Sequence record: NC_071007.1 | DNA: 64,000 bases | Reading direction: 5' to 3' (one strand) | Shown: in pieces, positions 3,880 to 40,742 of the stretch | Position numbering within the stretch: the first letter of the stretch is position 1 | Layout of the letters: each line of letters opens with the position of its first letter | Notes under the pieces: model-generated | What the model was told of the DNA's origin: nothing | The model's database searches: none | Seen by the model: only the letters and a program-made list of their open reading frames with translations | Program-made: the position numbers and the translations under genes

Positions 3880-3925
3880 CTTCTAGGTCTCTTATGCATG
3901 GGACATTAGATTGCCTGACGAGTAC

Positions 3926-11976: not shown

Positions 11977-12004
11977 TTTTCCTTTTCTAAATAGAGGAGT
12001 TAAA
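11977..12004 (-). repeat. Conserved intercistronic leader, copy 1
   Basis: TTTTCCTTTTCTAAATAGAGGAGTTAAA, identical to 45718-45745. Confidence 0.8.
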
Positions 12005-12773
12005 CGTTTTTACTTTCTTGTTTAGTCAGGTAATCAAGTCCACTGACCATTGTTTTAAAACTGGGGCGCTTTGGAGGTGTTGGTACAAATTGTTTTAACC
12101 CATACTGCTCCAAATATTCATCAGTTAACAATGCAGCTTTTCTAATTGTTTCTGGTGTATCGGAAGTATGTGCTAATTTCAATCCTTCCCTTGTTAAAAT
12201 AATCCAGTTCGATGGATTAATTTCTTTAAAGATAATCCCGTCAACAATTCCTTTTGTACCAAGCCAAATTGTTTCCATCCCAGTAAAGTAAATTGTTTTA
12301 CTATCAAACAACCTTGTTACTTCATTAATTGACATACCCGTTGTTTCAGCAATTTCTTTATGCGCTGTTTGGCTCTGGTTTACCAAAGTAGGGAGAGCAG
12401 AAAAAGCTTCTTCATGATCGATATCAGCTAAAGAGTAACTGGGTGAATGTTGAAACCAGACTGTATTAGCGTACGTCAAACGAAGGTATTTATCACTGGT
12501 AAATAAATACCAACCAGCACTTGCAATTCTTGACGTTGCAATAACAACAATATCTTGATGTCGTGATTCCAACATTTCTTTAATTACGAAACTTGTAGCT
12601 ACATCTCCGCCAGGTGTAGAAACATTTATTCTTATTGTATCTCTAGGATCAACTGCAATTTGAGGAAGGAAGTTAGTTGTAGCAAATTTTGCATTTAAAA
12701 TATCATGGATAAAAATGTTTCTGAGGTTTCCAGTTGAAACTTCTTGTTGGGTTTCTTTATTAGCTTTTGACAT
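12000..12773 (-). CDS. ClpP/crotonase-like protease
   Basis: RINVSTPGGDV, IASAG (catalytic Ser), FQHSP (His), GIVDGII. Confidence 0.75.
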   Translation of the reverse strand: MSKANKETQQEVSTGNLRNIFIHDILNAKFATTNFLPQIAVDPRDTIRINVSTPGGDVATSFVIKEMLESRHQDIVVIATSRIASAGWYLFTSDKYLRLTYANTVWFQHSPSYSLADIDHEEAFSALPTLVNQSQTAHKEIAETTGMSINEVTRLFDSKTIYFTGMETIWLGTKGIVDGIIFKEINPSNWIILTREGLKLAHTSDTPETIRKAALLTDEYLEQYGLKQFVPTPPKRPSFKTMVSGLDYLTKQESKNV

Positions 12774-13016
12774 TTAACGTTTCCTTTTCATTTCAATAAA
12801 AAGACAAAGAAGAAAAATTCCATATCCTAAATAAAATACTGGCCAACATGTTAACAACATAAATTGAATTAAAGACACCAATAATTTTTGTTTAAAAGTG
12901 TTTATGTAAGGGATACCAAAACACCACCAAAAATTACCTATTGTTATTAATCCAATGTACAAATAAATAACAAGAATAACTAAACATCCAAAAATCATTA
13001 ATAAAGAAGAAAGCAT
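12774..13016 (-). CDS. Small two-TM membrane protein
   Basis: Two long hydrophobic segments; first gene after promoter at 13044. Confidence 0.65.
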   Translation of the reverse strand: MLSSLLMIFGCLVILVIYLYIGLITIGNFWWCFGIPYINTFKQKLLVSLIQFMLLTCWPVFYLGYGIFLLCLFIEMKRKR

Positions 13017-13043
13017 AAATAATACTCTTATTGATACACAATA

Positions 13044-13066
13044 ATAATATCTGTCTGTAAAAATAT
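13044..13066 (-). promoter_or_regulatory. Early-type promoter, long variant
   Basis: ATAATATCTGTCTGTAAAAATAT, 22/23 identical to 51057-51079. Confidence 0.7.
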
Positions 13067-13075
13067 AAAGAAGTT

Positions 13076-13109
13076 AAAATACTCACCCAGTCTCCTAGGT
13101 GAGTATTTT
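13076..13109 (-). terminator. Terminator after DHFR
   Basis: 12-bp stem AAAATACTCACC/GGTGAGTATTTT. Confidence 0.75.
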
Positions 13110-13111
13110 AT

Positions 13112-13663
13112 TTACAGTTGTTTTTGTCTTAGTTCTTTGGGTTCTGGTCGAAGTCCTTGTTTAGTATAAAAATTAAGTTCTTCATCATGAATTGTTTTTT
13201 CCCAAATGTTAAAATCACATTTATCAGAAGTAAAACTATCATGGAACCGAAGATCCCAATCTTCCCATGTTCCTTCTACCTGAACATCAGCAAGATTAAC
13301 CGTTTTCACATTAGTAACGTAAACACGATCCACATATCTACGAAGTGTTCTGATTGTTTCAGCACCACCAATAATCATGATCTCTGGCAAAGTACTATAT
13401 TTATCCAATACTTTTTCAAAATCATCAAATACTTCAGCGCCGGGAATATTATCTACCCTGGTGCTCAAAACAACATTAATACGACCTGGCAATGGTTTTA
13501 AAGGAAGGGATTCCCAAGTCTTGTATCCCATTACCACAACTTTGTTTACTGTATGCTTTTTAAACCAAGCGAAATCTTCAGGAATAACTGGCCATGGAAG
13601 CTTATTATCATTTCCCATTCCGCCGCATTCATCAATAGCAAAAATCACACTAACAGTACTCAT
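13112..13663 (-). CDS. folA: Dihydrofolate reductase
   Basis: IFAIDECGGMG, LPWPVIPED, VVMGYKTWESLP, LPGRINVVLS, IIGG. Confidence 0.97.
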   Translation of the reverse strand: MSTVSVIFAIDECGGMGNDNKLPWPVIPEDFAWFKKHTVNKVVVMGYKTWESLPLKPLPGRINVVLSTRVDNIPGAEVFDDFEKVLDKYSTLPEIMIIGGAETIRTLRRYVDRVYVTNVKTVNLADVQVEGTWEDWDLRFHDSFTSDKCDFNIWEKTIHDEELNFYTKQGLRPEPKELRQKQL

Positions 13664-14172
13664 AGAAATTTACCTGCATTGATAGTTCCTTTGATCCAGC
13701 CAGTTTTGGTGTAGAATTCTACCGCATCTTTATTTCTGCCGTCGTAACAAAGAGAAAGAAAACTAAAATTCCGCATTCTTGCACCCCGACCAATCCTTTC
13801 CATTAACTCTCTCCCGTGTCCTTCTTTCCTGAATCCGGGGTTTGTCATGACATAAGTAATAATGAGTTCTTTAGAATAATCATCAATTCCATACGTGACT
13901 CTTGCAACACTGACTAATTGACCTTTATATCTAAGAACGACTAAATAAATCCCAGCATGTTCCCAATCAACAAAGAAAAGATCAGAAAGTGTATGGAGAG
14001 TCCGATTACGTTTATTTCCTTCTTGTTCGTAAGGAAAAGTTCTAAACGTTCTTTCATTATTGATAAGATCATTTCCCCAAGTCAAAATGTTACCAATTTC
14101 AATTTCGCTAAGAACTTCAATTGCACCTTCGTAATTTAACCACAAAAATTCATAGTCTTGATTATTGTTCAT
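13660..14172 (-). CDS. GNAT-family acetyltransferase
   Basis: VMTNPGFRKEGHGRELM acetyl-CoA motif A; NKDAVEFYTKTGW motif B. Confidence 0.8.
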   Translation of the reverse strand: MNNNQDYEFLWLNYEGAIEVLSEIEIGNILTWGNDLINNERTFRTFPYEQEGNKRNRTLHTLSDLFFVDWEHAGIYLVVLRYKGQLVSVARVTYGIDDYSKELIITYVMTNPGFRKEGHGRELMERIGRGARMRNFSFLSLCYDGRNKDAVEFYTKTGWIKGTINAGKFL

Positions 14173-14719
14173 TTGTCATTCGTTCCATCAATTCTTCATG
14201 AGTAATAAGACGATGTTTTTCTTTACCTGGCTTTAATAGTTTTAATAATGTTTCACTATTATCGGTTGGTTGTGTTTGGGTAATCTTTCCAGTAACTGTT
14301 AAAATGACTGGGTCATACCGTTCATCCCGCTCACCCATTTCGGAAACACAAGCAAACCAAATTGCTTGTTTAATAGGTTGGATATAGTAACCTTCTGGTA
14401 GACTCTCTTTCCTCATAAATCGATTTTCGTCTTCTAACCAGCAAGGAATATCATGCCCAAAATAACTGAGATCCCGAATCATTCTTTCCTTGCCAGTATA
14501 ATGATATTTTCTTACTTCATCATCGGGTATGGATCTAATTTCAGCAACTTCGTCATCATTAACTCTTCGCCCAGAACCATGCCAGCTGTTCCCATTCGGA
14601 TACATGGCTTTAAGTATTTCCCCGGTATGGAGTTTGATATCATAATCCGTTTTAAATCGCCAGCCGTTATAAGGGATCCAAACACCAGTTATAAATGTAG
14701 AGTGATTTAGTTTTTTCAT
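14162..14719 (-). CDS. Hypothetical protein
   Basis: 185-aa ORF overlapping neighbours in the operon. Confidence 0.65.
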   Translation of the reverse strand: MKKLNHSTFITGVWIPYNGWRFKTDYDIKLHTGEILKAMYPNGNSWHGSGRRVNDDEVAEIRSIPDDEVRKYHYTGKERMIRDLSYFGHDIPCWLEDENRFMRKESLPEGYYIQPIKQAIWFACVSEMGERDERYDPVILTVTGKITQTQPTDNSETLLKLLKPGKEKHRLITHEELMERMTNEQ

Positions 14720-15364
14720 TTAAACAACTCCCATGCGCTTTTTAGCGAGTTCCAATAGGTCACTTATCCCTTTGTATTCATATTGGTTCTGATACGCTGG
14801 AAAGCGATTCAAGCGATTATAAATAACCAATTCTTTCATTTCTGGATGAACGGTATGATGATCTCCCAATGGGTTATCGTCTAGCAAAAGAATTTCTTTA
14901 TCTGGATACTTTTCTTTTAGGAAAGTAATTTTGTTAGGGTTTTTCGCAGGATCAAGAACATGAATGTCATCAAAGAGATAATCAATCATTGTAGTCTTTA
15001 ACCAACGTTGTGTGTAGTTCAGACCTTCTTTATGATAACCCCGATGGGTACAAACTACGTATTCTACGTGATCAGGATATAACCGTTTAAAATCTTGGAA
15101 AAAACGCATTGATGCACGTGTACCAATAGGTGTTGGTTTTGCATAAAGCATGAAATGACCAGGACCAACAATTTCACGATCAATATGAGATTTAATATTT
15201 GGAGGGTAGTTTAGAGTTGAAGTATAATGTTCTAGTTCAGAAACTTGTTCAAGTTCTTCAGCCATGTTGTTTTTAGCAAAGAACAATTTAATTTGTTCAT
15301 TAATATAAGCACCAGTATTAACTAGCGTATCATCTTTATCAAATGCAATAACCAATTTCTTCAT
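14720..15364 (-). CDS. HAD-superfamily 5'(3')-deoxyribonucleotidase-like phosphatase
   Basis: Start MKKLVIAFDKDDTL (DxD motif I), VVCTHR (motif II), LLLDDNP (motif IV). Confidence 0.75.
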   Translation of the reverse strand: MKKLVIAFDKDDTLVNTGAYINEQIKLFFAKNNMAEELEQVSELEHYTSTLNYPPNIKSHIDREIVGPGHFMLYAKPTPIGTRASMRFFQDFKRLYPDHVEYVVCTHRGYHKEGLNYTQRWLKTTMIDYLFDDIHVLDPAKNPNKITFLKEKYPDKEILLLDDNPLGDHHTVHPEMKELVIYNRLNRFPAYQNQYEYKGISDLLELAKKRMGVV

Positions 15365-15431
15365 ATTGACCTCAAAAATAAAAGAGTATACTGCCACACG
15401 CAGTATACTCTTTTTAGTGTTATTTGAATGC

Positions 15432-15617
15432 TTAAAATGGTGTAGTGATCGCAAGTTTAACAAACATGGCGTAAAACCATCCGATCATTAAAATGGTCAG
15501 TGTTAACATTCCAGTAAACAATTTATCTTTGTTTATTTTCCCAACCTTTCTTCCAACTAAAGACCCAAAGCCTAACAGTAAAAGAAGAACGGAAATAACA
15601 ATTAAAAATTCAATCAT
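15432..15617 (-). CDS. Small two-TM membrane protein
   Basis: Hydrophobic-basic loop-hydrophobic, 61 aa. Confidence 0.6.
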   Translation of the reverse strand: MIEFLIVISVLLLLLGFGSLVGRKVGKINKDKLFTGMLTLTILMIGWFYAMFVKLAITTPF

Positions 15618-15901
15618 AGCGTTGCATACAAGAAAATGACCTGACCAAAATAAATACCAACTGCGTAAGCAACCATGATATAAATAATCCTTGGGAAAAG
15701 TGATCGGATACTTTCACACCAAGTCGGAGTCATAATCTTCAAAACATCACGATGATTTTTACCATAAATTAATTTGGTATTAGTTCGATCTTGATTGATT
15801 TTAGACAAAACTTTAATTAGGAAAATAACAATAAAAATCAAACAGGTAATATGAATATCGGTTACAAACAACTGTTGGAAAGCAAGCTCAAAAATATTCA
15901 T
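15614..15901 (-). CDS. Small two-TM membrane protein
   Basis: Two hydrophobic segments; ATGA overlap with next gene. Confidence 0.6.
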   Translation of the reverse strand: MNIFELAFQQLFVTDIHITCLIFIVIFLIKVLSKINQDRTNTKLIYGKNHRDVLKIMTPTWCESIRSLFPRIIYIMVAYAVGIYFGQVIFLYATL

Positions 15902-15913
15902 TTCATATCCTTA

Positions 15914-16303
15914 TTAGTGAACAGGGGACGTTGTAACAATTTCATCAACAATGGCATCAAATAGATCCTTTCTTTTCAAATCAACAATCATACTTGATGT
16001 ATCAAAATCATCTCGGAAACGTTTAATGTCTAATGGTTTCTCAATATGATACTGGCAGTAATCATTCCAATAAAACATCCACGTTTCTTTAATTGGAATA
16101 ATAATACACGTTCTACCCCCAATCTTCCCAGAGAAGATAGGTGTATCATTAATCAAATTGATGTTAATTAAAATCTTTCTTCCGTTAATACTCGAAGCGT
16201 AAAATCCCTTTTCTAATTGTTTATTTTCTATTAAGGTGGTTGCATAAATAAAATCAAATACATTTTTAGCATTAAAGAAAAGACTTTCCATTTTTAATAA
16301 CAT
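15914..16303 (-). CDS. Hypothetical protein
   Basis: 129-aa ORF in operon. Confidence 0.6.
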   Translation of the reverse strand: MLLKMESLFFNAKNVFDFIYATTLIENKQLEKGFYASSINGRKILININLINDTPIFSGKIGGRTCIIIPIKETWMFYWNDYCQYHIEKPLDIKRFRDDFDTSSMIVDLKRKDLFDAIVDEIVTTSPVH

Positions 16304-16322
16304 GAACTTTTATCCCTAAATT

Positions 16323-16346
16323 ATAAGGGGATTTTTATCCCCTTAT
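16323..16346 (-). terminator. Hairpin terminator
   Basis: 10-bp stem ATAAGGGGAT/ATCCCCTTAT. Confidence 0.7.
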
Positions 16347-16351
16347 CTTTA

Positions 16352-16456
16352 TTATTCAGTTTTATCGTTATCATCTTTGGAGAAAAACACTTTATATAAA
16401 AAGAACCCCATAGCAAGATTAAACAATAAATATAGTAAAACAAGCCAATTAAACAT
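16352..16456 (-). CDS. 34-aa single-TM peptide (below ORF-track cutoff)
   Basis: TAATG coupling to thyA stop; MFNWLVLLYLLFNLAMGFFLYKVFFSKDDNDKTE. Confidence 0.55.
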   Translation of the reverse strand: MFNWLVLLYLLFNLAMGFFLYKVFFSKDDNDKTE

Positions 16457-17541
16457 TAGACCGCCACAGGAAATTTAATAGCTGGTCCAACAAGTTCTCT
16501 TGAATAATTGATATATTCAAAATCATCAGGTTGGTATTGCGTAATTGAATCTCGTTTGGTTTTCAATTTAAACTGGGTAACTTCATCAAATACTGATTGA
16601 TGGTCATAAACATAATGAAGGTATTTTTCCAAGCCGTCAAAATGATTATGATAAAGATGAACATCACTCCCCGAATAGGTAAGGTTTCTTGCAACAAAAT
16701 TATGGGTATTGGCAATAAAATGCGCAAGGTGTGCGTACATATTAAAGTTTGCAGGAAGACCCAAGATAGTGTCACTGCTTCTCATAAAGAACTGAAGATC
16801 TGAGAACATTTTTGGGACGTTATGTTCATCAAATATCTTAGAGGATTCTTCTGTCCATTCAGCACCAGTTACTGGATAAATAAAATTAATTAGTTTGGGT
16901 GCATGTTTTTTAACCCATTCCAACCGATCAGAAAAACTCATAGGTTGACAAGTTACTGTCCAGGCAAAATGACACGGGGTCAATGCCTGTTTACCTACTT
17001 TGTAATTTTCTTTAGGCGGTGTTTTGGAATCCGGGATAAATGACGGATGCCAGCAGTTTACCAACATTCGACGAGATGTAGGGTTATGTTCCATCAGATT
17101 TTCAATGTATGCAATTTGGTCTGTTTTAGACCCATCTGGATTTGGCCAGTGTCTCCACAGATAACCATAAACGGGACCAAGTTCGCCTGTTGAATCAGCA
17201 AACTCTGACCAGAACGGGACACCCAATTTTGCCAGATCTTTTTCATTGGAAGAACCTGACAACATCCAAGTCATTTCTTTACCAGGGTTTTCAGGTTTTA
17301 GGAACCGTCCCCGTACGGATGGGAATGAGTGACGCAAGTCATGTGTATAAGAAACATGAGAGATGGAATTAACTCCAGTCCCAGTTCTATCTTCTTTTCC
17401 ATTTGTAATACTGTAAAGTTCTGTTAAGAGCTTTACGTACCAAAGCTCCCAGCTGTTATGAGCAACCACCGGCCAGTTAAATTTTAAACCTTTAATGTCA
17501 TTATCTTGCATCATTATTTCCATATGTTGTTGATCATTCAT
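16456..17541 (-). CDS. thyA: Thymidylate synthase
   Basis: DRTGTG, LGPVYG, RRMLV, PCHF, MRSSD, GLPANF, HLYHNH; likely start MNDQQH at 17541. Confidence 0.95.
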   Translation of the reverse strand: MNDQQHMEIMMQDNDIKGLKFNWPVVAHNSWELWYVKLLTELYSITNGKEDRTGTGVNSISHVSYTHDLRHSFPSVRGRFLKPENPGKEMTWMLSGSSNEKDLAKLGVPFWSEFADSTGELGPVYGYLWRHWPNPDGSKTDQIAYIENLMEHNPTSRRMLVNCWHPSFIPDSKTPPKENYKVGKQALTPCHFAWTVTCQPMSFSDRLEWVKKHAPKLINFIYPVTGAEWTEESSKIFDEHNVPKMFSDLQFFMRSSDTILGLPANFNMYAHLAHFIANTHNFVARNLTYSGSDVHLYHNHFDGLEKYLHYVYDHQSVFDEVTQFKLKTKRDSITQYQPDDFEYINYSRELVGPAIKFPVAV

Positions 17542-17569
17542 ATTTTTGTTATTCCAGTAACAAGAGAAA

Positions 17570-17758
17570 TTACTTTCTGTTTTTTCGATGAATATGTTTA
17601 TCATCAATAAAACATTCAGGAGCACTTGCGCCATTATTTTGAATATTTTTAGGTTGATACATTATCGATTTATAAGTCCTGTGAACTTTAATTTGGTGAA
17701 TATCTGTATTGAATACACCTTGTCCTAACAAAGCAAGTAAGACAGCATTTCCGTTCAT
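17570..17758 (-). CDS. Small hypothetical protein
   Basis: MNGNAVLL start immediately after upstream stop. Confidence 0.45.
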   Translation of the reverse strand: MNGNAVLLALLGQGVFNTDIHQIKVHRTYKSIMYQPKNIQNNGASAPECFIDDKHIHRKNRK

Positions 17759-19685: not shown

Positions 19686-20123
19686 TTACAATTTTTCAGA
19701 AGAAGATCTAATGGGTTTATCAGACATAATCCCAAAGAAACATTCTTCATCACAGAACCCAAAACCGAGACGATTATTAGAAAGGTCTAAAGTGTCAGGA
19801 AAAATTATCCCAATTACATAATCGTTGTAAGTAGTATAATCACAAAGGTAATAACATTCATCTTCCAAACAGTAAAGTAGTTTGCGAAGTGTCATATCTT
19901 CTTTGGAATTGTTTTGGTTATAAATAATATCGATATAATCGGACAACCAATCACACCAAGTAAACATATCCGGAGTGAATTCATGGACTACAGTAAAATC
20001 TGCTGGAAGTTTAAGTTCCTCCACAACAGTTCCTGCGCAACCAGAATAAAACAAAACAGCTTTGACTCCAGCTATTTCAATTTGATAAGCTTGAAGGTTA
20101 TTTGCTTGAGTAATGTGTTTCAT
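19686..20123 (-). CDS. Acidic hypothetical protein
   Basis: 23 D/E vs 10 K/R in 145 aa (hand count). Confidence 0.6.
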   Translation of the reverse strand: MKHITQANNLQAYQIEIAGVKAVLFYSGCAGTVVEELKLPADFTVVHEFTPDMFTWCDWLSDYIDIIYNQNNSKEDMTLRKLLYCLEDECYYLCDYTTYNDYVIGIIFPDTLDLSNNRLGFGFCDEECFFGIMSDKPIRSSSEKL

Positions 20124-20149: not shown

Positions 20150-20548
20150 TTAACCTAAATCAATTTTAACCAGTTTACCTTCTTTTGTCTTACAGAACTG
20201 GTTAATGTGTGCATCATTATCCCAGAAGTCAAAATCTAAATCAGACTCTTCTAGGAGTTGGGTAAACAACTTTGCATACTCTTCTTTGTTATCAAGTGGA
20301 GTATAACGTTTCATAACTACAATTAAACCAAAAGGATCAGCAAAATAAAGTTTAGGTATTCCTACTTTCCCCTCATTCTTTCTGATACATTCTACTTCCC
20401 AACGGTTTGCATACATGTTGTTAGAAAGAACCTCAAAACTGGGATTCCATTCATCCCATGCCGACGCTCTTGGAAACTTGATAACAATCTTTGGTAACAT
20501 AAGTACGTGTCTACATGTACCAATTGCCTGTTTTTTCATTGATCGCAT
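20150..20548 (-). CDS. Minimal protein-kinase-like protein B
   Basis: GTCRHV, VIKFPR (VAIK Lys), RWEVE (helix C Glu), VVMKRY, DAHINQF, ends at KIDLG. Confidence 0.6.
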   Translation of the reverse strand: MRSMKKQAIGTCRHVLMLPKIVIKFPRASAWDEWNPSFEVLSNNMYANRWEVECIRKNEGKVGIPKLYFADPFGLIVVMKRYTPLDNKEEYAKLFTQLLEESDLDFDFWDNDAHINQFCKTKEGKLVKIDLG

Positions 20549-20970
20549 ATCCCCATATCAAGTTTAACTAAACGACCGTATTTATCCCACCCGTAGTTAA
20601 AAACTTTGTTATCTATAAACCAAATATCTACATATCTTGCATCTTCTTGGTCTTGAAGGATTGTGAGACGTTTTGCATAACGAAGATATTCTTTATGGGT
20701 ATCTTTAACTTCCGTGTATTTTTCCATTACAATACAGATGCCAAAGAACCATGTACTAATAACAACGGGAATAGATTCTGGATAGTTACCTTTATAGTTT
20801 TTAATGGTGTTTAATTCTTCTTTGTTAGATTTTAAACCCCTTTTAAAATCTTTCCAAGATTCTGTTCTAGGAAGTTTGATTACCTTGTTCTTAAAAACAA
20901 AAACTTGTCTATCTCGACCAGAAACCTTTTCTTTACAATTAAACAATTTGATCATTATAAAATTAAACAT
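20536..20970 (-). CDS. Minimal protein-kinase-like protein A
   Basis: GRDRQV, VIKLPR, NKEE, IVMEKY, DNKVFNYG (DxKxxN), KLDMG. Confidence 0.65.
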   Translation of the reverse strand: MFNFIMIKLFNCKEKVSGRDRQVFVFKNKVIKLPRTESWKDFKRGLKSNKEELNTIKNYKGNYPESIPVVISTWFFGICIVMEKYTEVKDTHKEYLRYAKRLTILQDQEDARYVDIWFIDNKVFNYGWDKYGRLVKLDMGICDQ

Positions 20971-21016
20971 AGTGTTTATTTCCCTAAATTAAATAAACAT
21001 GATAAGTGTACGTATT

Positions 21017-21034
21017 GATAATATAGGTTTAAAA
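21017..21034 (-). promoter_or_regulatory. Early-type promoter motif driving kinase operon
   Basis: Minus strand TTTTAAACCTATATTATC. Confidence 0.7.
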
Positions 21035-21099
21035 TATTTTACGGTCAAGATTGTTTGAATTGGACTCTAGACGCATGGTCATAACTTAGGTAGAAAAAT

Positions 21100-21690
21100 A
21101 TGATAACTGACTCAATTATTCGAACAAAGAGAATAAAAGATCCTTTATTTTCTTCTGTCAAATTGTATTTAGCTGATCTTGCCCAACAGATGTTAGAAAA
21201 ATATGGTTTAGCTAAATATGAAGAAATCACTAATAAATATTACAATCTTAAAAATGAAGACGTTCAAATAGAACCTCCAACACTGTTTCCTAATGGAAAA
21301 TTAATTGCTTGTTTTTTATCTAGAAAAAGTGGGCTGTTTTATGCTGACGCAATACTTCCTACAGTGGAATTAAAAGATATCTTTAGGGATTTACTTATCG
21401 CAATTCCAGAGAAAACAAAAGTACAGTTAGAAAATGAAATTACCTCAAATGTAGTTGATTTTGGGTGTTTTTATCTAACTGATCAAAGTAATTATGTTAT
21501 TGTATTAAACAACAATCAAAACACTATTGAAAGCGTGTATGAAGCTCTAGGATCAATTTATTGGGAAGAGATGACACTTACCCTAGAAGAAGAACAGAAT
21601 CCTTATACAAAGCTTTCAGGAAGCTTAAAAGTCAAATCTCCTAATATGTCTGAAATGACATTAGGGGTTTATTTTAAAGACCATTTTTAA
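21100..21690 (+). CDS. Stand-alone paralog of the N-terminal domain of the 32522-35719 protein
   Basis: DPLFS, VxLKDIF.D, IY.xE and SG...K motifs are co-linear with the first ~200 aa of the 1065-aa protein. Confidence 0.7.
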   Translation: MITDSIIRTKRIKDPLFSSVKLYLADLAQQMLEKYGLAKYEEITNKYYNLKNEDVQIEPPTLFPNGKLIACFLSRKSGLFYADAILPTVELKDIFRDLLIAIPEKTKVQLENEITSNVVDFGCFYLTDQSNYVIVLNNNQNTIESVYEALGSIYWEEMTLTLEEEQNPYTKLSGSLKVKSPNMSEMTLGVYFKDHF

Positions 21691-21703: not shown

Positions 21704-21734
21704 TAGCTCTGTGAACCAATGGTTCACAGAGCTA
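21704..21734. terminator. Bidirectional hairpin between convergent genes
   Basis: 15-bp arms TAGCTCTGTGAACCA/TGGTTCACAGAGCTA, 1-nt spacer. Confidence 0.8.
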
Positions 21735-24346: not shown

Positions 24347-24742
24347 TTAAAGTTTACGGATAAAAACACGCATCGGAAATTCAGAAGTATTTTCGCCAGG
24401 TACTGAGGTTTTCCAGAATTTAGAACCATTCGGGTTATCAAGAAATCTGGCAACCAGCAACATTTTGTAAACAACATCAAATTGATGGCTGTTTTCTACC
24501 GCCCAGCGATAAACTTTGGCTTCCCAATTGGTGCCATGAAGAATCTCTTCGGCACGATAGGAAAGATGTTCTTCCAGGTGTTCTGGGGATTTGAACTGAA
24601 AAACGCCGTAACCAGCAACCAGAAACTGGTGGTCGTCTTGTTGTATAACTTCATTGTCCCCAAGAAAACGAAACTTATGTTTCAGTCCATAAAGTTTCAT
24701 TTTGAACTGGGTTTTCAGCATTTCATCAAGCAGGATATTCAT
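24347..24742 (-). CDS. Hypothetical protein, paralog of 30240-30638
   Basis: RFLGDNEVI..D.Q..VAG.G and FP...FIR.L motifs shared; likely start MNILL at 24742. Confidence 0.65.
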   Translation of the reverse strand: MNILLDEMLKTQFKMKLYGLKHKFRFLGDNEVIQQDDHQFLVAGYGVFQFKSPEHLEEHLSYRAEEILHGTNWEAKVYRWAVENSHQFDVVYKMLLVARFLDNPNGSKFWKTSVPGENTSEFPMRVFIRKL

Positions 24743-24772
24743 AGTCATTCCTTTTCTAAATAAAGAGTGAAT

Positions 24773-24801
24773 AGGTGAAAGGATCAATGATCCTTTCACC
24801 T
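24773..24801 (-). terminator. Hairpin (terminator and/or 5' leader stem)
   Basis: 14-bp arms AGGTGAAAGGATCA/TGATCCTTTCACCT, immediately downstream of the promoter motif at 24804. Confidence 0.7.
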
Positions 24802-24803
24802 TA

Positions 24804-24820
24804 ATAATGTATGTTTAAAA
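24804..24820 (-). promoter_or_regulatory. Early-type promoter motif (one mismatch)
   Basis: Minus strand TTTTAAACATACATTAT. Confidence 0.5.
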
Positions 24821-30239: not shown

Positions 30240-30638
30240 TTAAAGTCCTCGAATAAATGCAAAAGAGGGGAAATTTTTAACTATCCCATCTGAGCATACT
30301 GTAGGTTGAACAAAACCAGCATAGTCATCATTGGCTACTGAAGCAATAATCCAAGCAGGTCTTCCTTTATGAAAATATTGGGGATTTTTCAATAAGAAAG
30401 ATTTTACTTTAGCTTGGTGTTTAAACTTCTTTGGTATGGATAGATGAGAAAATATTTTAATCATCTCTTCTTTTGAACTATAATTTCTAAATCCAAACCC
30501 GGCCACTTGGATTTGATAGTCGGTTGGAAGAATAACTTCATCATCTTTTAAAAACCTTGCTTTTCCTTTAATTCCAAGCGGGAATGTATAAGGAAAAGGT
30601 TTGGATTTAATTTCTTCAATCAACTGGTCAATAGTCAT
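30240..30638 (-). CDS. Hypothetical protein, paralog of 24347-24742
   Basis: RFLKDDEVI..DYQIQVAGFG; FPSFAFIRGL. Confidence 0.65.
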   Translation of the reverse strand: MTIDQLIEEIKSKPFPYTFPLGIKGKARFLKDDEVILPTDYQIQVAGFGFRNYSSKEEMIKIFSHLSIPKKFKHQAKVKSFLLKNPQYFHKGRPAWIIASVANDDYAGFVQPTVCSDGIVKNFPSFAFIRGL

Positions 30639-31043: not shown

Positions 31044-31072
31044 GTTTATTTCCTTTTGTCAATTGCATATAA

Positions 31073-31089
31073 ATAATATCTAGTTAAAG
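31073..31089 (-). promoter_or_regulatory. Early-type promoter motif
   Basis: Minus strand CTTTAACTAGATATTAT. Confidence 0.6.
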
Positions 31090-32521: not shown

Positions 32522-35500
32522 ATGACAACTGAAAAGAAAACGTTTCCTAGGTGGGTTAGAGATCCTTTATTTTCACCTATTAAACAATTCTTAAATAAAC
32601 GTTTAAAGATTATTACAGAACAAGGCGATTTGGTTGAACAGTTATTGGCAAATGACCGTTACAAGCAAATGAAACCAGAGGACTTTGTTGCGGAAGATAT
32701 TTTTAATTCACTGGATGGAAAGAAACGTTTCTGTTTAGTGAGAAGAAATAAACAATTTGCCAGAGTTGATTTAGAATTAGAACATGTTAGATTAAAAGAT
32801 ATTTTTACTGATCAAGATATCTCTTTTATTAGTTTAACAAATCAAGCTGAATTTATTCGTCGCTTTAAACTAGGTGAAGTACAAGGTAAATTGTTGTACT
32901 TGGTTTGGAGAGATAGTTTTGCTGTTTGTTTTGAAAACAACAAAATAATGAACCTTACCGAAGTAGATAAACTATTTAATCATATCTACTTTGATGAACT
33001 TCATTTAGAGCGTGTAGATGAAACTACAATTGATCCTAATACATTAACCAGTGGGGTTGTTAGGATTAAAGACAGAAGTTGCTCAGATGAGCTTGTACAC
33101 GTTTTTGTTACAGAAAATATCGTTGAACAGCTTGCTTTAGACAGGATTGTAGATAACTATCCTCCAACTATGATTTTGAGGCGCGGGGATAGTTTTAGAC
33201 ACCTTACCAAAATTATGATTGGTGATGAGGATGTTACTGGTTTAGCTGAAATTTCTTATATAAGTAATAATGGTCGTATTAATGTTTCTCAGACTACAAA
33301 TAAACTTGAAACTATTTTCAAAGCAGTTAGAGGATCAAGTACCGAAGAGTTGCAGGAAACAGTAACCATTAATATTTCTGTCAACTTTATGGGGGAAGTG
33401 TTTAATAAACAATCTGTTATTGCCACCAGGATTGTCCCTGATGTTGTCAGTGAGCTGAAATTAGAAGGTTATCCCGTAGAAGTTACTGTTCCGACGGGTA
33501 GACAAATAGGTATTGTTGTAAAAGGTAAGTTTAACAATAATTTTGTTTCTTTTACACAAGCACCTAATTTACTGACTAGTTTAGTAACAGGAATGACATT
33601 AACCAACCAAGGTAATTATCGGGATGGGATTCTTTATTTGGGGACCTGTAATGTCGATATTACTTCTGGAGTAATAAACGATTTATTAAAGGGTAATTTT
33701 ATTTATACAATAGCTGGGGCGACACATACGGCCAGTTCCTTTGTAGAATTAAACATTACGCCTGTAAATCCTAATTTACCAGAATTAGTTAATACTAGTT
33801 TAACCCCAACTCTGTTACAAGGTAATAATAACAGTAATGGAAGTTTTACTTATGTTAACAAATTAAACAATGTCATCATCCCCAATACCAAATTAGATAT
33901 CCCAACCACTGACTTGGGAAGTAAACGGTTAATTCGTTTTACTGGATTTACAACTAACAAAGTAAACTATACATTGTTAAACCTTGCCGGTAATCCAGGA
34001 ACTGTGGAGAGCGAACAAGTTACCTTTACAACAAGATACATTGATCCAACTACTGGTTTAGTTTATACTAGACAGGATAAAGTTACTCCTAAAGTAATTA
34101 CTTTATCAGATTTAGCGTTGATCTCTTTATTTGACCAACCCATTTCGGTTAAAAAATATGAATCTGGATTAGTTCCTTTTAAAATGTTAATCAATGGTAA
34201 TGAAGATAAAACAAAAATTACTACTATTGAAATCATTGATAATAAAAATTATTTAGCCGGAACTATTTTTGGTAATAAACCAAAAGGTTCTTGGCAGGTA
34301 TTTGGAACTGGTCAAACTGAAGAAACTATTCCCGTTAGTTTTAAAGTTGGTTTTAACGTTGATGAAACAATTAGGTATGTAACAGGAATTCAAAATTTTA
34401 TTGTTTCACCATGGATCGGAAATTCAATTGGCGTTATTCCAAGTGAATTAAATATTTCTGGAAGAGCAGGGGAAAGTGGAGAGTTTACATTATCTTTCTT
34501 TGAGGATGTAACTTTTGCTAATACTCGTTTAAATTACATTCCTGATTTGAGTATTGTCCCAAGTCAATTAAATATTGTTGGTAAACTACAAAGTAATACT
34601 GAATGGATAAAAGGGAGCTATCAGCTATTTGGAGTAGGGAACCATTTAGGACATTTGACATATAGTTTAACCGATGGAACAAATCCTGATGATACTATCA
34701 AAGTGCCTTTAAAAGTTACAATATTACCTGGAGAAGAATTATTCTTTAATGTCACAGGGCTCACTGAAGCAAAACCGCTCCTTCCAGGAATAATCAATTG
34801 TGATATCCAATATAAAGGAATAAACATTCCATTAAACGACCCTAGAGTACGTTTAGAAGTAGAGTTAGGGGAAAGAGCTAAGACTGTATTCACAATTGGA
34901 CAAACAACGTCTGAAGGGATTACATTCAACAGCATTGTAGATGATATCCCAATGGGAGGAAATGTTATTTATGACATGACCTCTGAACTTAATTTTATTG
35001 ATGATTTAGGAGTTACACAAACTCGCAGTAAAGAAATTGCTGTTAAACTTTATCGAAATAATTTTACTTCTGTTATTGCTACATTAATAACGAATCCAGT
35101 AAAACCAATTATTTCTGATCAACCAATCGTCATTAATATTAAAGATCTCGATAATGATCCTCTTCCGGGAGCAATATTGGAAAGTGTTGTTATTGCAAAT
35201 GACAGCAATCACTTAGGTCCTATTCAGAGTTATCGAAATTCACTCGTTGAACGCAGAACTCAAAGTCTAGGTAATTATGAATTAAAGGCAACAACAAACC
35301 ATTTTGGTGGGAATCTAAATACCACATTAAAAATTATCATAGGCGGGTCTATAGTTGATGTTGTTATTCCCGATACAATAGTCGGAATTTCTCCAATTAA
35401 ATCTTTGGCTGGAAACACAGGCATCGCGGTTAACAATATTGGTAGTACAATTAACTTCACATTAAAACAAGATCGTTTAAATAATTTAAATGTCCCTGTC

Positions 35501-35719
35501 ATTGCAAAACGAATTGAAAATATTCGATATAGCAATGAGATGTTTAAAGAGCTAACTAATTTGGTTATGCTTGATAATAATGGAAATTACAAATTAGATC
35601 TTGTTTCTGCTGGAACAGTAGGTATTGGTGTTGTTGATTTTACACTAATCACTAATGAAACTAATAATGTTGAAGTTGCTTGGGAAATTCGTTTAGAAAT
35701 TAATATGGTTAGAGAATAA
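32522..35719 (+). CDS. Large virion fibre/structural protein: ~200-aa anchor plus tandem beta-rich (Ig-like) modules
   Basis: 1065 aa; T/V/I/N/G-rich repeats of about 100 aa; N-terminal domain paralogous to 21100-21690. Confidence 0.6.
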   Translation: MTTEKKTFPRWVRDPLFSPIKQFLNKRLKIITEQGDLVEQLLANDRYKQMKPEDFVAEDIFNSLDGKKRFCLVRRNKQFARVDLELEHVRLKDIFTDQDISFISLTNQAEFIRRFKLGEVQGKLLYLVWRDSFAVCFENNKIMNLTEVDKLFNHIYFDELHLERVDETTIDPNTLTSGVVRIKDRSCSDELVHVFVTENIVEQLALDRIVDNYPPTMILRRGDSFRHLTKIMIGDEDVTGLAEISYISNNGRINVSQTTNKLETIFKAVRGSSTEELQETVTINISVNFMGEVFNKQSVIATRIVPDVVSELKLEGYPVEVTVPTGRQIGIVVKGKFNNNFVSFTQAPNLLTSLVTGMTLTNQGNYRDGILYLGTCNVDITSGVINDLLKGNFIYTIAGATHTASSFVELNITPVNPNLPELVNTSLTPTLLQGNNNSNGSFTYVNKLNNVIIPNTKLDIPTTDLGSKRLIRFTGFTTNKVNYTLLNLAGNPGTVESEQVTFTTRYIDPTTGLVYTRQDKVTPKVITLSDLALISLFDQPISVKKYESGLVPFKMLINGNEDKTKITTIEIIDNKNYLAGTIFGNKPKGSWQVFGTGQTEETIPVSFKVGFNVDETIRYVTGIQNFIVSPWIGNSIGVIPSELNISGRAGESGEFTLSFFEDVTFANTRLNYIPDLSIVPSQLNIVGKLQSNTEWIKGSYQLFGVGNHLGHLTYSLTDGTNPDDTIKVPLKVTILPGEELFFNVTGLTEAKPLLPGIINCDIQYKGINIPLNDPRVRLEVELGERAKTVFTIGQTTSEGITFNSIVDDIPMGGNVIYDMTSELNFIDDLGVTQTRSKEIAVKLYRNNFTSVIATLITNPVKPIISDQPIVINIKDLDNDPLPGAILESVVIANDSNHLGPIQSYRNSLVERRTQSLGNYELKATTNHFGGNLNTTLKIIIGGSIVDVVIPDTIVGISPIKSLAGNTGIAVNNIGSTINFTLKQDRLNNLNVPVIAKRIENIRYSNEMFKELTNLVMLDNNGNYKLDLVSAGTVGIGVVDFTLITNETNNVEVAWEIRLEINMVRE

Positions 35720-36094: not shown

Positions 36095-37951
36095 TTATTT
36101 AAATATAATTCCATCTGTTGTTACTGTGTTTATCGCGACGTTTAACTTGTCGCCGATCCCAGAATGGAATGATACAATTCCACCTGCCTTTACTTCTACA
36201 GAAAGGTACCCTGCACGATCACAGTTAGCGCCACGAGCAGATACTCGCCCGCCATCCCGACATGTTATTGCTCGATCTAAGGAGTCTGTTATAATTCCGT
36301 CGATAACATTAACAGTTCCGCCATCAATACAAGAAACTCCACGTTGTTTAGAACTTGAAAGATTCGCACCTCTGGCGTCTATAGAACCGGTATCTCTAGC
36401 TTCAACAGCTCTGTCACATCGCAGGGCCTGAATCCCGGTAGCGTCTATTCTTCCGCCACCAGCGACAAGTGCACCAAACCCGCAATCATTGATCTTAGCT
36501 TGTTTGCTTGCGCTCTGGGCGGCTATCGTAGCCACACCAATTGCGTACATACCTATCGGGTTAGTCGAGGCGTCAGCGCCATCTGCCTGAATATGCGCCG
36601 CACCCGATGCAAATATTCCTTTATCGGCGCAACCGTTAGCTATTCCAAGTTGGAAAGAAACACTAGAGCTATCACTCGCGATAACACCAGCTTGACCAGT
36701 GCACCCAGATACGTCAACTTCTGCACCTTCTATTTGGGAACAACCAGAAGCTATAATACCGTATTCGGAACACCCCCTTGCACTATCTTTAACCCACATT
36801 GCTGCTTCAGGTGTTTGTTTACTACGGGCATTAATTCTCCCACCATGGAGGGCGTGATAACCTCGCTTACTTCTGGCGGCGCAAGACTCTCGACAGTTTA
36901 CTATGGACCCGTCCCTAGAACAAAATGCCGTACCGGCGGCCCCTGAAGCATCAGACTGATAAAGATCAGCCATTGAATTCCAAATACAATAAACACCATA
37001 ATCGCCTAATGAATTTGCAAAATTACTTCTTGGAAATCCAACGACAGATCCATGGGCTACATGAAGCCCTCTATTTCTGGCATTAGAGAAATCAACCCCA
37101 GTTGTGTTTCCTGCCCCACCTCCACCGCCGCTTAAAACAAGCCCCCGCATATAGCAAAAACCCCAACCACCATAGAGAGCTTTAAATCCGTTCCTGGATT
37201 TTTGAACTCCAGAACCTGGATAAAGATAAACACCTGCGGCTTCAATAACAGCGACACCGTCTTTAGAGGTAGTATTGCTATCATAATAAAATAAGGCTTT
37301 TATGCTTGGTAAAACGGACTGATTACTTGCCCCAAAAATAGGGATTAAATCATCTTCATCGGATAATTTAGTGGTTATTTTTGTGTGATCAATCCTGACG
37401 GGAACATCACTTTCTATAATGATCCAGTTTAAATCGGAACCATTGATAACCAAGATTTGTTCCGCCATGACAAAACCAGATAAAAGTTTTATTTTACATT
37501 TGGCTTGGCCATTTTTAAATAACGGTCTCATTTTTACTAATTGATGGATGGCGGCTGTTATTGTTTTAAATTGAACAGCTGGACCAACTTCAATAGTAAA
37601 ACTTTCTTCTAAATCTAATACGGCTGCCGAAGAACTTAGTGCAGCCAATATTGTATTTTGAGGAGTGTCAAAATCAGTAGTGGATAAAAATGCCATTAAT
37701 CTTTGAGCAATGTTTTTTGTAATTCCACCAGGCGCTGGATTCTTATACCCAACTTTTGTTGCTCCAGTGGGGCCAGAAATATTATTAATTAATTCTGTAA
37801 CGTTCCTTTCCATATAGGAATAAGTAACGCGCTCTATTCCAAACCGATCTCGCCACATATCAGATGACGAGTTTAGTGCTTTGTCTAAATTACCAGCATT
37901 AAAAAATAAATCTGTCATGGCTGTGGAGCCAATAGGATTATTGCTTCCCAT
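36095..37951 (-). CDS. Tailspike 1, parallel beta-helix receptor-binding protein
   Basis: Shared NPIGS..DL..NAGNLD..DRFG anchor; Gly/Ala/Ser/Cys-rich beta-helix repeats; start MGSNN with GAGG SD. Confidence 0.8.
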   Translation of the reverse strand: MGSNNPIGSTAMTDLFFNAGNLDKALNSSSDMWRDRFGIERVTYSYMERNVTELINNISGPTGATKVGYKNPAPGGITKNIAQRLMAFLSTTDFDTPQNTILAALSSSAAVLDLEESFTIEVGPAVQFKTITAAIHQLVKMRPLFKNGQAKCKIKLLSGFVMAEQILVINGSDLNWIIIESDVPVRIDHTKITTKLSDEDDLIPIFGASNQSVLPSIKALFYYDSNTTSKDGVAVIEAAGVYLYPGSGVQKSRNGFKALYGGWGFCYMRGLVLSGGGGGAGNTTGVDFSNARNRGLHVAHGSVVGFPRSNFANSLGDYGVYCIWNSMADLYQSDASGAAGTAFCSRDGSIVNCRESCAARSKRGYHALHGGRINARSKQTPEAAMWVKDSARGCSEYGIIASGCSQIEGAEVDVSGCTGQAGVIASDSSSVSFQLGIANGCADKGIFASGAAHIQADGADASTNPIGMYAIGVATIAAQSASKQAKINDCGFGALVAGGGRIDATGIQALRCDRAVEARDTGSIDARGANLSSSKQRGVSCIDGGTVNVIDGIITDSLDRAITCRDGGRVSARGANCDRAGYLSVEVKAGGIVSFHSGIGDKLNVAINTVTTDGIIFK

Positions 37952-37998
37952 AACCAACCTCAAGTATTTTGTTTGTTAACAAATGATCTTAAAAAAAT

Positions 37999-38029
37999 AA
38001 CTTCTCCTAGGCATTATCTAGGAGAAGTT
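37999..38029 (-). terminator. Hairpin after tailspike 2
   Basis: 12-bp stem AACTTCTCCTAG/CTAGGAGAAGTT. Confidence 0.75.
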
Positions 38030-38036
38030 CTATACT

Positions 38037-40741: not shown

Positions 40742-40742
40742 C

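Follow-up and report, generated by a model that had tools for sequence, protein, structure and literature searches.

The sequence analyzed is a stretch of 64,000 nucleotides from record NC_071007.1 (the window), which originates from the phiKZ-like jumbo phage ZPAH34 of Aeromonas. Two adjacent genes of this window, designated A and B, are described here. The coordinates of both genes, of the motifs within them, and of the flanking signals are presented in Table 1. Both open reading frames are intact, and both are annotated. The longest open reading frame for B extends over positions 20150..20548 of the minus strand and would encode 132 residues, and the shorter form that starts at 20539 is preferred on the basis of the deposited annotation and the position of the ribosome-binding site. 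A BLASTP comparison of A with B gave 28% identity over 135 residues with an E value of 1e-14. Two overlapping paralogues had been proposed for this locus in an earlier note; the similarity and the ATGA overlap confirm this proposal, with a length of 129 residues for B rather than 132. An identical 4-base overlap is found in the annotated coordinates of the two-gene pair of phage AerS_266, and the gene pair of phage PS1 overlaps by one base.

Table 1. Features of the A/B locus in the window (A numbering or B numbering for residues, as indicated)
Feature	Position	Strand	Description
Gene A (UOX39523)	20536..20970	minus	144 aa; miniature protein-kinase-like, full catalytic residue set
Gene B (UOX39522)	20150..20539	minus	129 aa; diverged paralogue of A, altered catalytic loop
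ATGA, A stop / B start overlap	20536..20539	minus	from the sequence and the deposited annotation
A G-x-x-R-x-V, residues 18-23	20902..20919	minus	phosphate-loop equivalent, invariant Arg
A Lys32	20875..20877	minus	strand-3 ATP-binding Lys; conserved in 167/167
A Glu52	20815..20817	minus	helix-C Glu; conserved in 166/167
A D-N-K-V-F-N, residues 120-125	20596..20613	minus	catalytic loop
A D-M-G, residues 138-140	20551..20559	minus	Mg-binding motif; 4 residues before stop
B D-A-H-I-N-Q, residues 109-114	20198..20215	minus	catalytic loop; Lys to His, Asn to Gln
B D-L-G, residues 127-129	20153..20161	minus	last three residues of B
Phage promoter-like motif	21008..21027	minus	yMGATATTATYnnTrTGTAA type; 37 nt upstream of the A start codon
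Sigma-70-like TTGACC-17-TATATT	21020..21048	minus	10/12 match; overlaps the phage motif
Terminator-like hairpin	21704..21734	minus	14-bp stem, then T run; end of the preceding leftward operon

The A/B pair is found in Chaoshanvirus, Ferozepurvirus, and Ludhianavirus. Most other phages carry one copy only, for example the T4-like phage JS10 and the Seuratvirus Skure, and the occurrence of single copies in such different phages indicates that pairing is not general. The terminator-like hairpin closes the preceding operon, and a new unit therefore begins with A and B. The operon headed by these two genes runs on into nucleotide-metabolism genes, which include thymidylate synthase and dihydrofolate reductase. 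The gene downstream of B (19686..20123) has a counterpart in AerS_266 only, and the neighboring genes differ in JS10, Skure, PS1, and LAh10. The family genes lie within runs of small unannotated phage genes; in JS10 the gene adjoins RNA ligase 2. The family neighborhoods showed no association with genes for defence or counter-defence. Two annotations found near homologues were discarded. The label "virion structural protein" near the homologue in Shewanella phage SXP01 belongs to the neighboring CDS, and the "putative serine/threonine protein phosphatase" beside the A-type gene of LAh10 has neither support from Pfam nor a homologue in the window.

With a 20-nt matrix, the promoter-like motif upstream of A reaches a score of 22.3 bits. 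This motif was initially recognized by reading the long intergenic regions, and the first pattern count was made post hoc; the motif was then tested on 150 kb outside of the window and on other phages. Over 214 kb of ZPAH34, 17 of the 19 matches are located in non-coding DNA, which represents ~9% of the sequence, and 18 of the 19 are on the minus strand. Outside of the training set, 10 of the 12 matches are intergenic. A fuzzy search and a 9-mer enrichment analysis returned no repeated motif, and the signals from a Gibbs sampler were limited to T-rich stretches and ribosome-binding sites. In AerS_266 the motif block is retained between diverged flanks, and in AerS_266, LAh10, and PS1 alike it directly precedes the A-type gene, which brings the total to four phage genera.

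The early promoters of phiKZ-like phages were previously described as a conserved AT-rich motif of about 10 nt located just upstream of presumed early operons (PMC7598289), and the motif at 21008-21027 fits this description. The same motif precedes three operons with RNA-polymerase-subunit genes that are not labelled as virion-associated, and among the matches in ZPAH34 none precedes the capsid, tail-sheath, or tail-tube genes. The position of the motif before both the A-type genes and the RNA-polymerase-subunit operons fits early expression. From the motif and by analogy, early expression of A and B is considered somewhat probable.

The sigma-70-like match that overlaps the phage motif was also evaluated. 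In this region 14 such sites were found, compared with 10.3 ± 4.0 in shuffled sequences, which is not above chance. The -35 hexamer of the match is not conserved in AerS_266, and ZPAH34 encodes both virion and non-virion RNA polymerases of its own. For these reasons the sigma-70-like promoter before A is probably coincidental. A and B had been described as the first genes after a strong early-type promoter. The first-gene position is upheld by the conserved phage motif and the word "early" is plausible, but sites like the sigma-70 match occur at chance level in this region.

A and B were matched to PHROG 4301, annotated as "unknown function", with E values of 4.9e-21 and 1.2e-10, respectively. 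Their relatives match the same group with E values from 7e-20 to 2.6e-35. The family consists of 317 clusters at 50% identity, with proteins of 115-145 residues encoded by jumbo, T4-like, and other virulent phages. No relative was obtained when 185,579 representative bacterial and archaeal genomes were scanned with a narrow A-type-specific pattern, which argues only weakly for absence; the family appears to be restricted to phages. No paper on the PHROG 4301 family was found in the literature searches.

Direct searches of Pfam and NCBIfam with A and B identified no kinase family, and searches of the PDB sequences gave chance-level matches only. When 150 relatives were searched against Pfam, the only matches were five below threshold, for ABC1 (2), FAM69 (2), and APH (1); NCBIfam gave none, and the family is without a Pfam model, an NCBIfam model, or a name. 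A profile built from 150 members was then compared with the PDB sequences. Only weak matches were obtained (E values of 0.02-0.6); eukaryotic-type kinases account for 59 of the 60 listed. Against the kinase TTK, the alignment of the profile is free of gaps from the catalytic loop through DFG.

The C-terminal end lies within 3 residues of the final D-x-G in 96 of the 133 relatives. An ending at D-x-G is therefore the normal form of a large family and not a product of decay, and the term "truncated", as applied earlier to A and B, does not hold in the sense of damage. A and B could in principle have decayed from a full-length kinase gene through truncation in ZPAH34, and the only observation in favor of this reading is the impression of truncation at D-x-G. 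The size of the family, the shared end, and the conservation of the catalytic residues refute it, and the confident models and the intact annotated reading frames are also contrary to it; the probability of decay is judged to be practically nil. A minority of relatives are longer (e.g., P0043, P0044, P0083, and P0125) and contain a conserved segment of ~50 residues after D-Y-G that is followed by divergent tails. No second copy of the domain was found in the long relatives, and their tails are mutually unrelated.

Conservation was counted over an alignment of 169 relatives in A numbering, with denominators that vary by column. In addition to Lys32 and Glu52 (Table 1), Asn49, which is located one helical turn before Glu52, is conserved in 159 of 167 sequences, and Met82 of the hinge in 141 of 168. 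In the phosphate-loop equivalent, Gly18, Arg21, and Val23 are found in 164/164, 165/165, and 161/166 sequences, respectively. The Gly loop listed in the earlier note is present in the form G-x-x-R-x-V, which departs from the classical glycine-rich loop in that a single Gly is invariant and is accompanied by an invariant Arg. In the catalytic loop, position 120 is Asp in 113 and Glu in 19 of 135 sequences, Lys122 is found in 93 of 136, and Asn125 in 110 of 136. The Mg-binding Asp138 and Gly140 are invariant (132/132 and 103/103), and D-x-G takes the form D-(Y/L/M/I)-G in the family, where it is mostly D-Y-G.

The spacing of the catalytic Asp, the Asn, and the Mg-binding Asp that is typical of kinases is present in A as D120, N125, and D138. 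At the same positions in B both Asp residues are kept and Gln is found instead of Asn; B also retains the Lys (K21) and the helix-C Glu (E48). The motifs read earlier from the two genes (the VIK Lys, helix-C Glu, hinge, catalytic loop, and D-x-G) are thus all present and are conserved among the 169 relatives, and the loops D-N-K-V-F-N of A and D-A-H-I-N-Q of B are as given. The assignment of B as a pseudokinase is weak, because the B-type orthologues of PS1 and LAh10, from other genera, retain the catalytic-loop Asn, because the loop Lys varies across the family, and because B itself has the Lys, the Glu, and both Asp residues.

The AlphaFold2 model of A has a pLDDT of 88.5 and a pTM of 0.80, and the corresponding values for B are 93.8 and 0.84. 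Both models contain a five-stranded N-lobe sheet with helix C, the hinge, the catalytic loop, and the Mg-binding loop, in the order found in kinases. The models were compared with the PDB using Foldseek. All 50 matches listed for A are kinase-like, as are 49 of the 50 listed for B, where the exception is SAICAR synthetase at rank 40. The best E values are 3.6e-4 for A and 1.5e-3 for B, with a probability of 1.00 and a query TM of about 0.55-0.6. The matches listed include MELK, WbdD, PRPK/Bud32, PknB, Rio2, AceK, CK1, and BRAF, together with capreomycin and aminoglycoside phosphotransferases and the methylthioribose, fructosamine, and choline kinases. In the BFVD, Foldseek retrieved phage homologues, a "Protein kinase domain-containing protein" of RP12, T7-like entries named "Protein kinase", and giant-virus Ser/Thr kinases. 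A predicted fold unlike that of protein kinases had been named as an outcome that would count against the assignment, and both models were found to be kinase-like. The kinase-like fold and the family assignment of A and B are regarded as nearly certain.

Of the C-lobe, the models retain a single helix (A residues 92-108), the catalytic loop, and a beta-hairpin that bears D-x-G. Since A stops 4 residues past D-M-G and B stops at D-L-G, both lack the activation segment and the core helices beyond DFG. The statement that A and B have no activation segment or C-lobe is accurate in that both proteins end at D-x-G, but the helix, the loop, and the hairpin stay. Each protein is thus predicted to consist of an N-lobe, a hinge, one C-lobe helix, a catalytic loop, and a Mg-binding D-x-G, at which the chain stops. 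Neither the activation segment nor the helical substrate-binding lobe is present in the family at large.

The kinase of phage T7 (gp0.7, T7K) acts early, is promiscuous, and disarms defence systems, and its homologues have D-P-V instead of DFG and a C-terminal DNA-binding shut-off domain (PMC13645617). The likeness of A and B to T7 gp0.7 and its relative JSS1_004 (PHROG 15752) consists of a phage-encoded kinase-like fold and a probably early gene, and T7-like entries appear in the BFVD list. B gave a weak profile match to PHROG 15752 (E 1.2e-3) over 68 residues of the hinge and catalytic-loop region, and A gave no match to it in the PHROG profile search. In contrast to T7K, the motif in A and B is D-M-G or D-L-G rather than D-P-V, the protein ends there without a shut-off domain, and the whole amounts to roughly half of a full kinase domain. 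A and B are regarded as lying outside of the T7 gp0.7 kinase family.

Bud32/PRPK and the RIO kinases share with A and B a small size, a kinase-like fold, and the lack of a classical activation segment. The Foldseek E values are 7.6e-4 for A with PRPK, 1.8e-3 for A with Rio2, and 4.5e-3 for B with Rio2. The matched chains are 225-270 residues long, of which the query covers about a third with a target TM of about 0.3-0.38, and both Bud32/PRPK and the RIO kinases retain a helical C-lobe. No match to these kinases was found in Pfam, NCBIfam, or the PDB sequences, and the likeness is at the level of the fold only. The kinase domain of WbdD and other bacterial phosphotransferases are among the top Foldseek matches, with E values of 4.3e-4 for A and 1.5e-3 for B. 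WbdD, the capreomycin and aminoglycoside phosphotransferases, AceK, and the kinase domains of lanthipeptide synthetases are much larger, have substrate-binding C-terminal parts, and are 12-19% identical. The bacterial effectors of the HopBF1 type, with a "minimal protein kinase fold", are pared down yet active, at about 200 residues and with the C-lobe kept. The idea of a pared-down fold is shared with A and B; this likeness is by description only, as HopBF1 is absent from the search matches.

The matches to small-molecule phosphotransferases raise the question of whether A and B phosphorylate a metabolite, a nucleotide, a sugar, or a lipid head group, which would be held by Arg21 and Asn49. 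WbdD, the capreomycin and aminoglycoside phosphotransferases, and others of this type are among the Foldseek matches listed, and the sub-threshold Pfam matches include APH in one member and ABC1 in two. The continuation of the operon into thymidylate synthase and dihydrofolate reductase, and the location of the JS10 gene beside RNA ligase 2, also agree with such a substrate. Nearly all PDB sequence matches of the profile are protein kinases, however, and the spacing of the loop Lys, two residues past the Asp, agrees with that of the aligned Ser/Thr kinase. In small-molecule kinases of this fold the substrate is held by a large helical C-terminal subdomain, and that subdomain is missing here. 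A small-molecule kinase is considered improbable.

A and B could alternatively be nucleotide binders without catalytic activity (pseudokinase-like switches, scaffolds, or binders of ATP or of a signalling nucleotide) that act by binding to a partner. Known kinases rely for catalysis on a structural core that is absent here, the strictly invariant residues K32, E52, D138, and R21 are those expected to serve as ligands of the nucleotide, Mg, or phosphate, and phage accessory regions are rich in these small proteins. The catalytic-loop Lys (93/136) and Asn (110/136) are more variable, and B has lost both. The catalytic position is nevertheless Asp or Glu in 132 of 135 sequences, and the Asn, where present, is at the spacing of active kinases. 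Conservation of the Asp/Glu and the Asn to this degree would be surprising if no chemistry took place at the gamma-phosphate, and a purely non-catalytic role is viewed as unlikely.

The missing C-lobe might be supplied in trans by a phage or host protein, or the one remaining C-lobe helix might be covered by homo- or hetero-oligomerisation. The models imply that the surface normally packed on the C-lobe core must be either exposed or covered, and the minority of relatives with the conserved segment after D-Y-G would fit a divided kinase. A bacterial precedent is HipBST, in which HipS and HipT each represent one end of HipA (PMC9325769). In HipBST the parts of a kinase from a different family are encoded by separate, adjacent genes, whereas A and B both encode the same half (the N-lobe and the catalytic loop) and not complementary halves. 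Provision of a C-lobe by a neighboring gene is rejected because no neighbor is conserved among the phages compared, the gene at 19686..20123 being shared with AerS_266 only. The long forms, without a second domain copy and with unrelated tails, likewise argue against a split enzyme, for which only a slim chance is allowed.

For the preferred explanation, a kinase-like pair of translationally coupled paralogues that is made early and acts in takeover, the chances are placed at even when it is taken as a whole. A would bind Mg-ATP and transfer or hydrolyze the gamma-phosphate using the residues of Ser/Thr kinases, and the invariant loop Arg21 and the helix-C Asn49 may replace some of the missing parts. 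In the absence of a substrate-binding lobe, the specificity could be low or supplied by a partner. This partner could be B, in which the nucleotide and Mg ligands are kept and the catalytic loop is changed. The overlapping stop and start codons and the retention of the pair in three genera are the only hints that A and B may form a heterodimer. For the substrate-completed kinase suggested in the earlier note, no conserved partner gene was identified in the neighborhoods compared. The pair would be produced early from a promoter of the virion RNA polymerase. Like the T7 kinase, it would target proteins of the host (or of the phage) during takeover and may counter defence systems.

The strength of this proposal differs among its parts. 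Nucleotide binding or catalysis by A and B, as suggested by the conservation of the residues, is judged reasonably probable. Phosphorylation of proteins for takeover or anti-defence is put forward tentatively by analogy with the T7 kinase. To our knowledge, in all characterized kinases of this fold the active site is organized by a helix and a hydrophobic core that are missing here, and therefore catalysis is not assured. The non-canonical phosphate loop, and a loop in B without the usual Lys and Asn, are further points against the proposal. It is doubtful that the family members are self-sufficient active kinases of 115-145 residues, with a catalytic A and the loop-altered B pairing in Aeromonas jumbo phages and broadly phosphorylating host proteins in the first minutes of infection. 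If this were true, they would be much smaller than any other catalytic unit of the kinase fold and would work without an activation segment, core C-lobe helices, or a substrate-binding groove.

What is new here is an extremely reduced variant of the kinase-like fold in a widespread and unnamed phage family. Phage kinases were recently shown to disarm bacterial defences broadly (PMC13645617), and the present family, if active, would be a second widespread class of phage kinase beside the T7 type. Activity would also set a new lower limit for an enzyme of the kinase fold, at about 120 residues without a C-lobe core, and would bear on the roles of the core helices and the activation segment in catalysis versus regulation. 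Even if A and B bind nucleotides only, a large family of presumably early phage proteins with 317 clusters at 50% identity gains a fold, a likely ligand, and residues that can be tested.

The window region is identical (100%) to Aeromonas phage ZPAH34 (OM810292, 234.5 kb, genus Chaoshanvirus), with window position equal to record position minus 62000. ZPAH34 and its relative AerS_266 are phiKZ-like jumbo phages that encode chimallin and both virion and non-virion multisubunit RNA polymerases (PMC10321303, PMC10673249); a kinase is mentioned in neither of these two papers. Genes A and B are both deposited as encoding hypothetical proteins, and the stop codon of A overlaps the annotated start codon of B in the tetranucleotide ATGA. 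The two products are paralogues (E 1e-14, 28% identity over 135 residues). All of the kinase motifs listed in the earlier note were found in these sequences. The catalytic loop of A reads D-N-K-V-F-N and the protein ends four residues past D-M-G. The loop of B reads D-A-H-I-N-Q and the protein ends with D-L-G.

Structures of A and B were predicted with AlphaFold2 using family alignments. Both models are confident (pLDDT 88.5 and pTM 0.80 for A; pLDDT 93.8 and pTM 0.84 for B) and contain three strands, a long helix, two strands, a hinge, one helix of 14-17 residues, a short helix and a hairpin, at the end of which the D-x-G motif is located. When A and B were compared with the PDB using Foldseek, 99 of the 100 matches listed were protein-kinase-like structures, including MELK, WbdD, PRPK/Bud32, PknB, Rio2, AceK, CK1, BRAF, phosphorylase kinase, and the capreomycin and aminoglycoside phosphotransferases. 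The sole non-kinase among them was SAICAR synthetase, at rank 40 for B. The best E values were 3.6e-4 for A and 1.5e-3 for B, with a probability of 1.00 and query TM scores of 0.5-0.6. A small-molecule kinase is a rival explanation for these proteins. In a comparison with predicted structures of viral proteins, homologues from Aeromonas phages D6 and PS1 were among the best matches, together with a protein of Ralstonia phage RP12 labelled in UniProt as "Protein kinase domain-containing protein", "Protein kinase" entries of T7-like phages and giant-virus Ser/Thr kinases. The kinase-like fold proposed in the earlier note is therefore not refuted by the models.

In sequence searches, A and B matched no curated kinase family in Pfam or NCBIfam and no sequence in the PDB. 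Both matched PHROG 4301, of unknown function (E 4.9e-21 for A and 1.2e-10 for B), and B weakly matched the T7-kinase PHROG 15752 (E 1.2e-3); by the membership tests of the T7 kinase family, A and B fall outside it. A profile built from 150 family members gave weak matches to PDB sequences (E 0.02-0.6), 59 of the 60 listed being eukaryotic-type kinases (TTK, p38, KSR, MAP3K8). In the ungapped alignment with TTK, the family catalytic loop and terminal D-Y-G fall on the catalytic loop and DFG of TTK. When the 150 members were scanned singly against Pfam, the only recurrent meaningful signals were sub-threshold matches to ABC1, FAM69-kinase and APH in five members.

When 1.84 billion representative proteins were searched with a family profile, 317 clusters were detected (E <= 1e-3), most of them 115-135 residues long. 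No relative carries a name beyond "hypothetical protein" or a precomputed Pfam domain. The D-x-G motif is followed by at most three residues in 96 of the 133 relatives whose alignments reach the end of the profile. This ending is thus, as judged from the alignments, the normal architecture of the family; the description of A and B as truncated kinases does not hold in the sense of damage, and decay of a full-length kinase gene is excluded. A few long forms (269-350 aa) exist, one of them found repeatedly on contigs of up to 224 kb. Four metagenomic members of 274-350 aa (P0043, P0044, P0083 and P0125) share a segment of about 50 residues after D-Y-G, followed by mutually unrelated tails of 100-200 residues. 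Neither a second copy of the domain nor a Pfam domain was found in the long forms.

Conservation was counted in 169 family sequences, with residues numbered as in A. The phosphate loop retains G18 (164/164) and R21 (165/165), followed by K32 (167/167) and P34 (163/167); helix C retains N49 (159/167) and E52 (166/167), and G77 is found in 164/168. In the catalytic loop, position 120 is Asp in 113 and Glu in 19 of 135 sequences, K122 is present in 93/136 and N125 in 110/136. D138 (132/132) and G140 (103/103) of the Mg-binding motif are invariant. Thus the putative ATP-binding Lys, its partner Glu, the catalytic Asp and Asn, and the Mg-binding Asp are under strong constraint. The same constraint holds for two family-specific positions, the phosphate-loop Arg and the Asn that precedes the helix-C Glu by one helical turn. 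A rival to the phosphotransferase reading is a non-catalytic nucleotide binder.

B keeps K21, E48, D109 and D127 in its own numbering, and its loop Lys and Asn are replaced by His and Gln, respectively. The suggestion that B is a pseudokinase is weak, as the B-type orthologues of PS1 and LAh10 keep the loop Asn and differ only in the residue that replaces the loop Lys, a position that is the least conserved of the set across the family. B is best described from its sequence as a diverged paralogue with an altered loop. A-type proteins are mostly basic (pI about 8.6-9.7; family median 9.1) and ZPAH34-type B proteins are near neutral (6.1-6.7), a difference that is compatible with an A-B complex without being evidence for one.

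Family members were detected by tblastn in 71 phage records, including several genera of Aeromonas jumbo phages, the T4-like coliphages JS10, NC-G and IME341, Erwinia and Ralstonia jumbo phages, very large coliphages and the 59-kb Seuratvirus Skure. A narrow-pattern scan of representative bacterial and archaeal genomes returned no member; two relatives are placed in metagenome bins labelled as bacteria. The genes generally lie in runs of small, co-directional, unannotated genes. In JS10 the member (3531-3899) is located between 24.3 and rnlB (RNA ligase 2), co-directional with both, and the late head-vertex gene 24 has the reverse orientation. The match in NC-G also adjoins an RNA ligase gene. 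AerS_266, PS1 and LAh10 also carry the A/B pair, as neighbouring genes in PS1 and with one gene separating them in LAh10; some related contigs carry three copies, and JS10 and Skure carry one each. Conservation of the gene that follows B is limited to AerS_266, so no general partner gene was found. Directly upstream of the A-type gene of LAh10, a gene at 2782-3390 is deposited as a "putative serine/threonine protein phosphatase". It is without a Pfam match or a window homologue, and the genes that occupy its position on two related contigs (L007 and L008) share 70% identity with it.

The gap upstream of A (129 bp) contains a sigma-70-like site. It is probably coincidental, being not above chance in the region and having a -35 element that is not conserved in AerS_266, in a phage with its own RNA polymerases. 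The block upstream of A that is conserved in AerS_266 contains ATATTATCAATACG, and inspection of the long intergenic stretches showed an element of this kind before several leftward operons. The pattern derived from these has 5 occurrences in the window (0.06 expected; a post hoc count) and 3 in 150 kb outside it (0.33 expected). A 20-nt matrix built from seven sites was then used to scan 214 kb of the phage at a cut-off of at least 14 bits. It gave 19 matches, 17 within the ~9% of DNA that is non-coding and 18 on the minus strand, located 15-60 nt ahead of start codons; 10 of the 12 outside the training set are intergenic. Motif copies in the window are given in the table.

Genes, promoter-like motif copies and terminator-like hairpin in the window
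Feature	Position	Strand	Details
Gene A	20536..20970	-	ORF, 144 aa, UOX39523
Gene B	20150..20548	-	longest ORF, 132 aa; annotated start 20539, 129 aa; UOX39522
Promoter-like motif before A	21008-21027	-	22.3 bits
Further motif copies	13034-13053, 24794-24813, 31063-31082	-	intergenic, upstream of leftward operons; yMGATATTATYnnTrTGTAA
Further motif copies	48108-48127, 51047-51066, 57619-57638	-	intergenic, upstream of leftward operons
Further motif copy	51054-51073	+	intergenic, upstream of leftward operon
Motif match	19914-19933		inside coding region
Terminator-like hairpin	21704-21734	-	strong; closes preceding leftward operon

One copy precedes clpP-groL and another the long series of small genes that extends from 31043 to the terminator at 21704. 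Among the sites of the 214 kb, some precede three operons with RNA-polymerase-subunit genes that are not labelled virion-associated. No site was found in the 214 kb before capsid, tail-sheath, tail-tube or "virion-associated" polymerase genes. The matrix also places a site immediately before the A-type gene of AerS_266 (21.1 bits), of LAh10 (17.0 bits) and of PS1 (13.0 bits), and a 12.6-bit site precedes the gene that opens the corresponding cluster on L007. Early promoters of phiKZ-like phages carry a conserved AT-rich motif of ~10 nt near -10 (PMC7598289), a description that the sequence before A fits. The motif and the hairpin therefore lend sequence support to the claim that A and B are the first genes behind an early-type promoter. 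The leftward run that they head continues (12000-17634, minus strand) through genes annotated as thymidylate synthase, acetyltransferases and dihydrofolate reductase, and the ClpP and GroEL homologues follow this run.

Other genes of the window were also compared. The 196-aa gene divergent from A (21100-21690, plus strand) resembles part of a 1065-aa protein encoded 11 kb away (32522-35719, plus strand; E 4e-10, 24.5% over 200 residues); neither product has a Pfam or PHROG match. In LAh10 and on related metagenomic contigs, the homologue of the 196-aa gene has the same placement, immediately ahead of the cluster of kinase-like genes and on the other strand. A module of ~50-96 residues recurs with up to 65% identity in four consecutive large genes at 36095-44984 (minus strand; 622, 738, 712 and 686 aa), and the two that were scanned match tail-fibre and tail-spike PHROGs; the four look like tandem receptor-binding protein paralogues. 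Two small paralogues at 24347-24799 and 30240-30638 (both minus strand; 30% identity over 135 residues, E 3e-10) lie inside one leftward gene run and have no PHROG match.

By predicted fold and catalytic motifs, the family belongs to the known kinase superfamily, and it is without the helical C-lobe that is common to every characterised member. The literature and family databases searched yielded no paper, model or name for the family. The parts retained would be those that hold Mg-ATP and carry out phosphotransfer, and what is missing would be the parts that place protein substrates and control activity. A further rival is a kinase completed in trans. The T7 kinase is a promiscuous early phage kinase that can redirect the host and disarm defence systems (PMC13645617), and such a role for A and B is an analogy only. 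The most economical reading is an ATP-dependent phosphotransferase that would have little built-in substrate selectivity and be produced as infection begins. The missing elements would be made up for by the invariant loop Arg and the helix-C Asn, and B, a duplicate translationally coupled to A, may serve as a partner subunit in Aeromonas jumbo phages.
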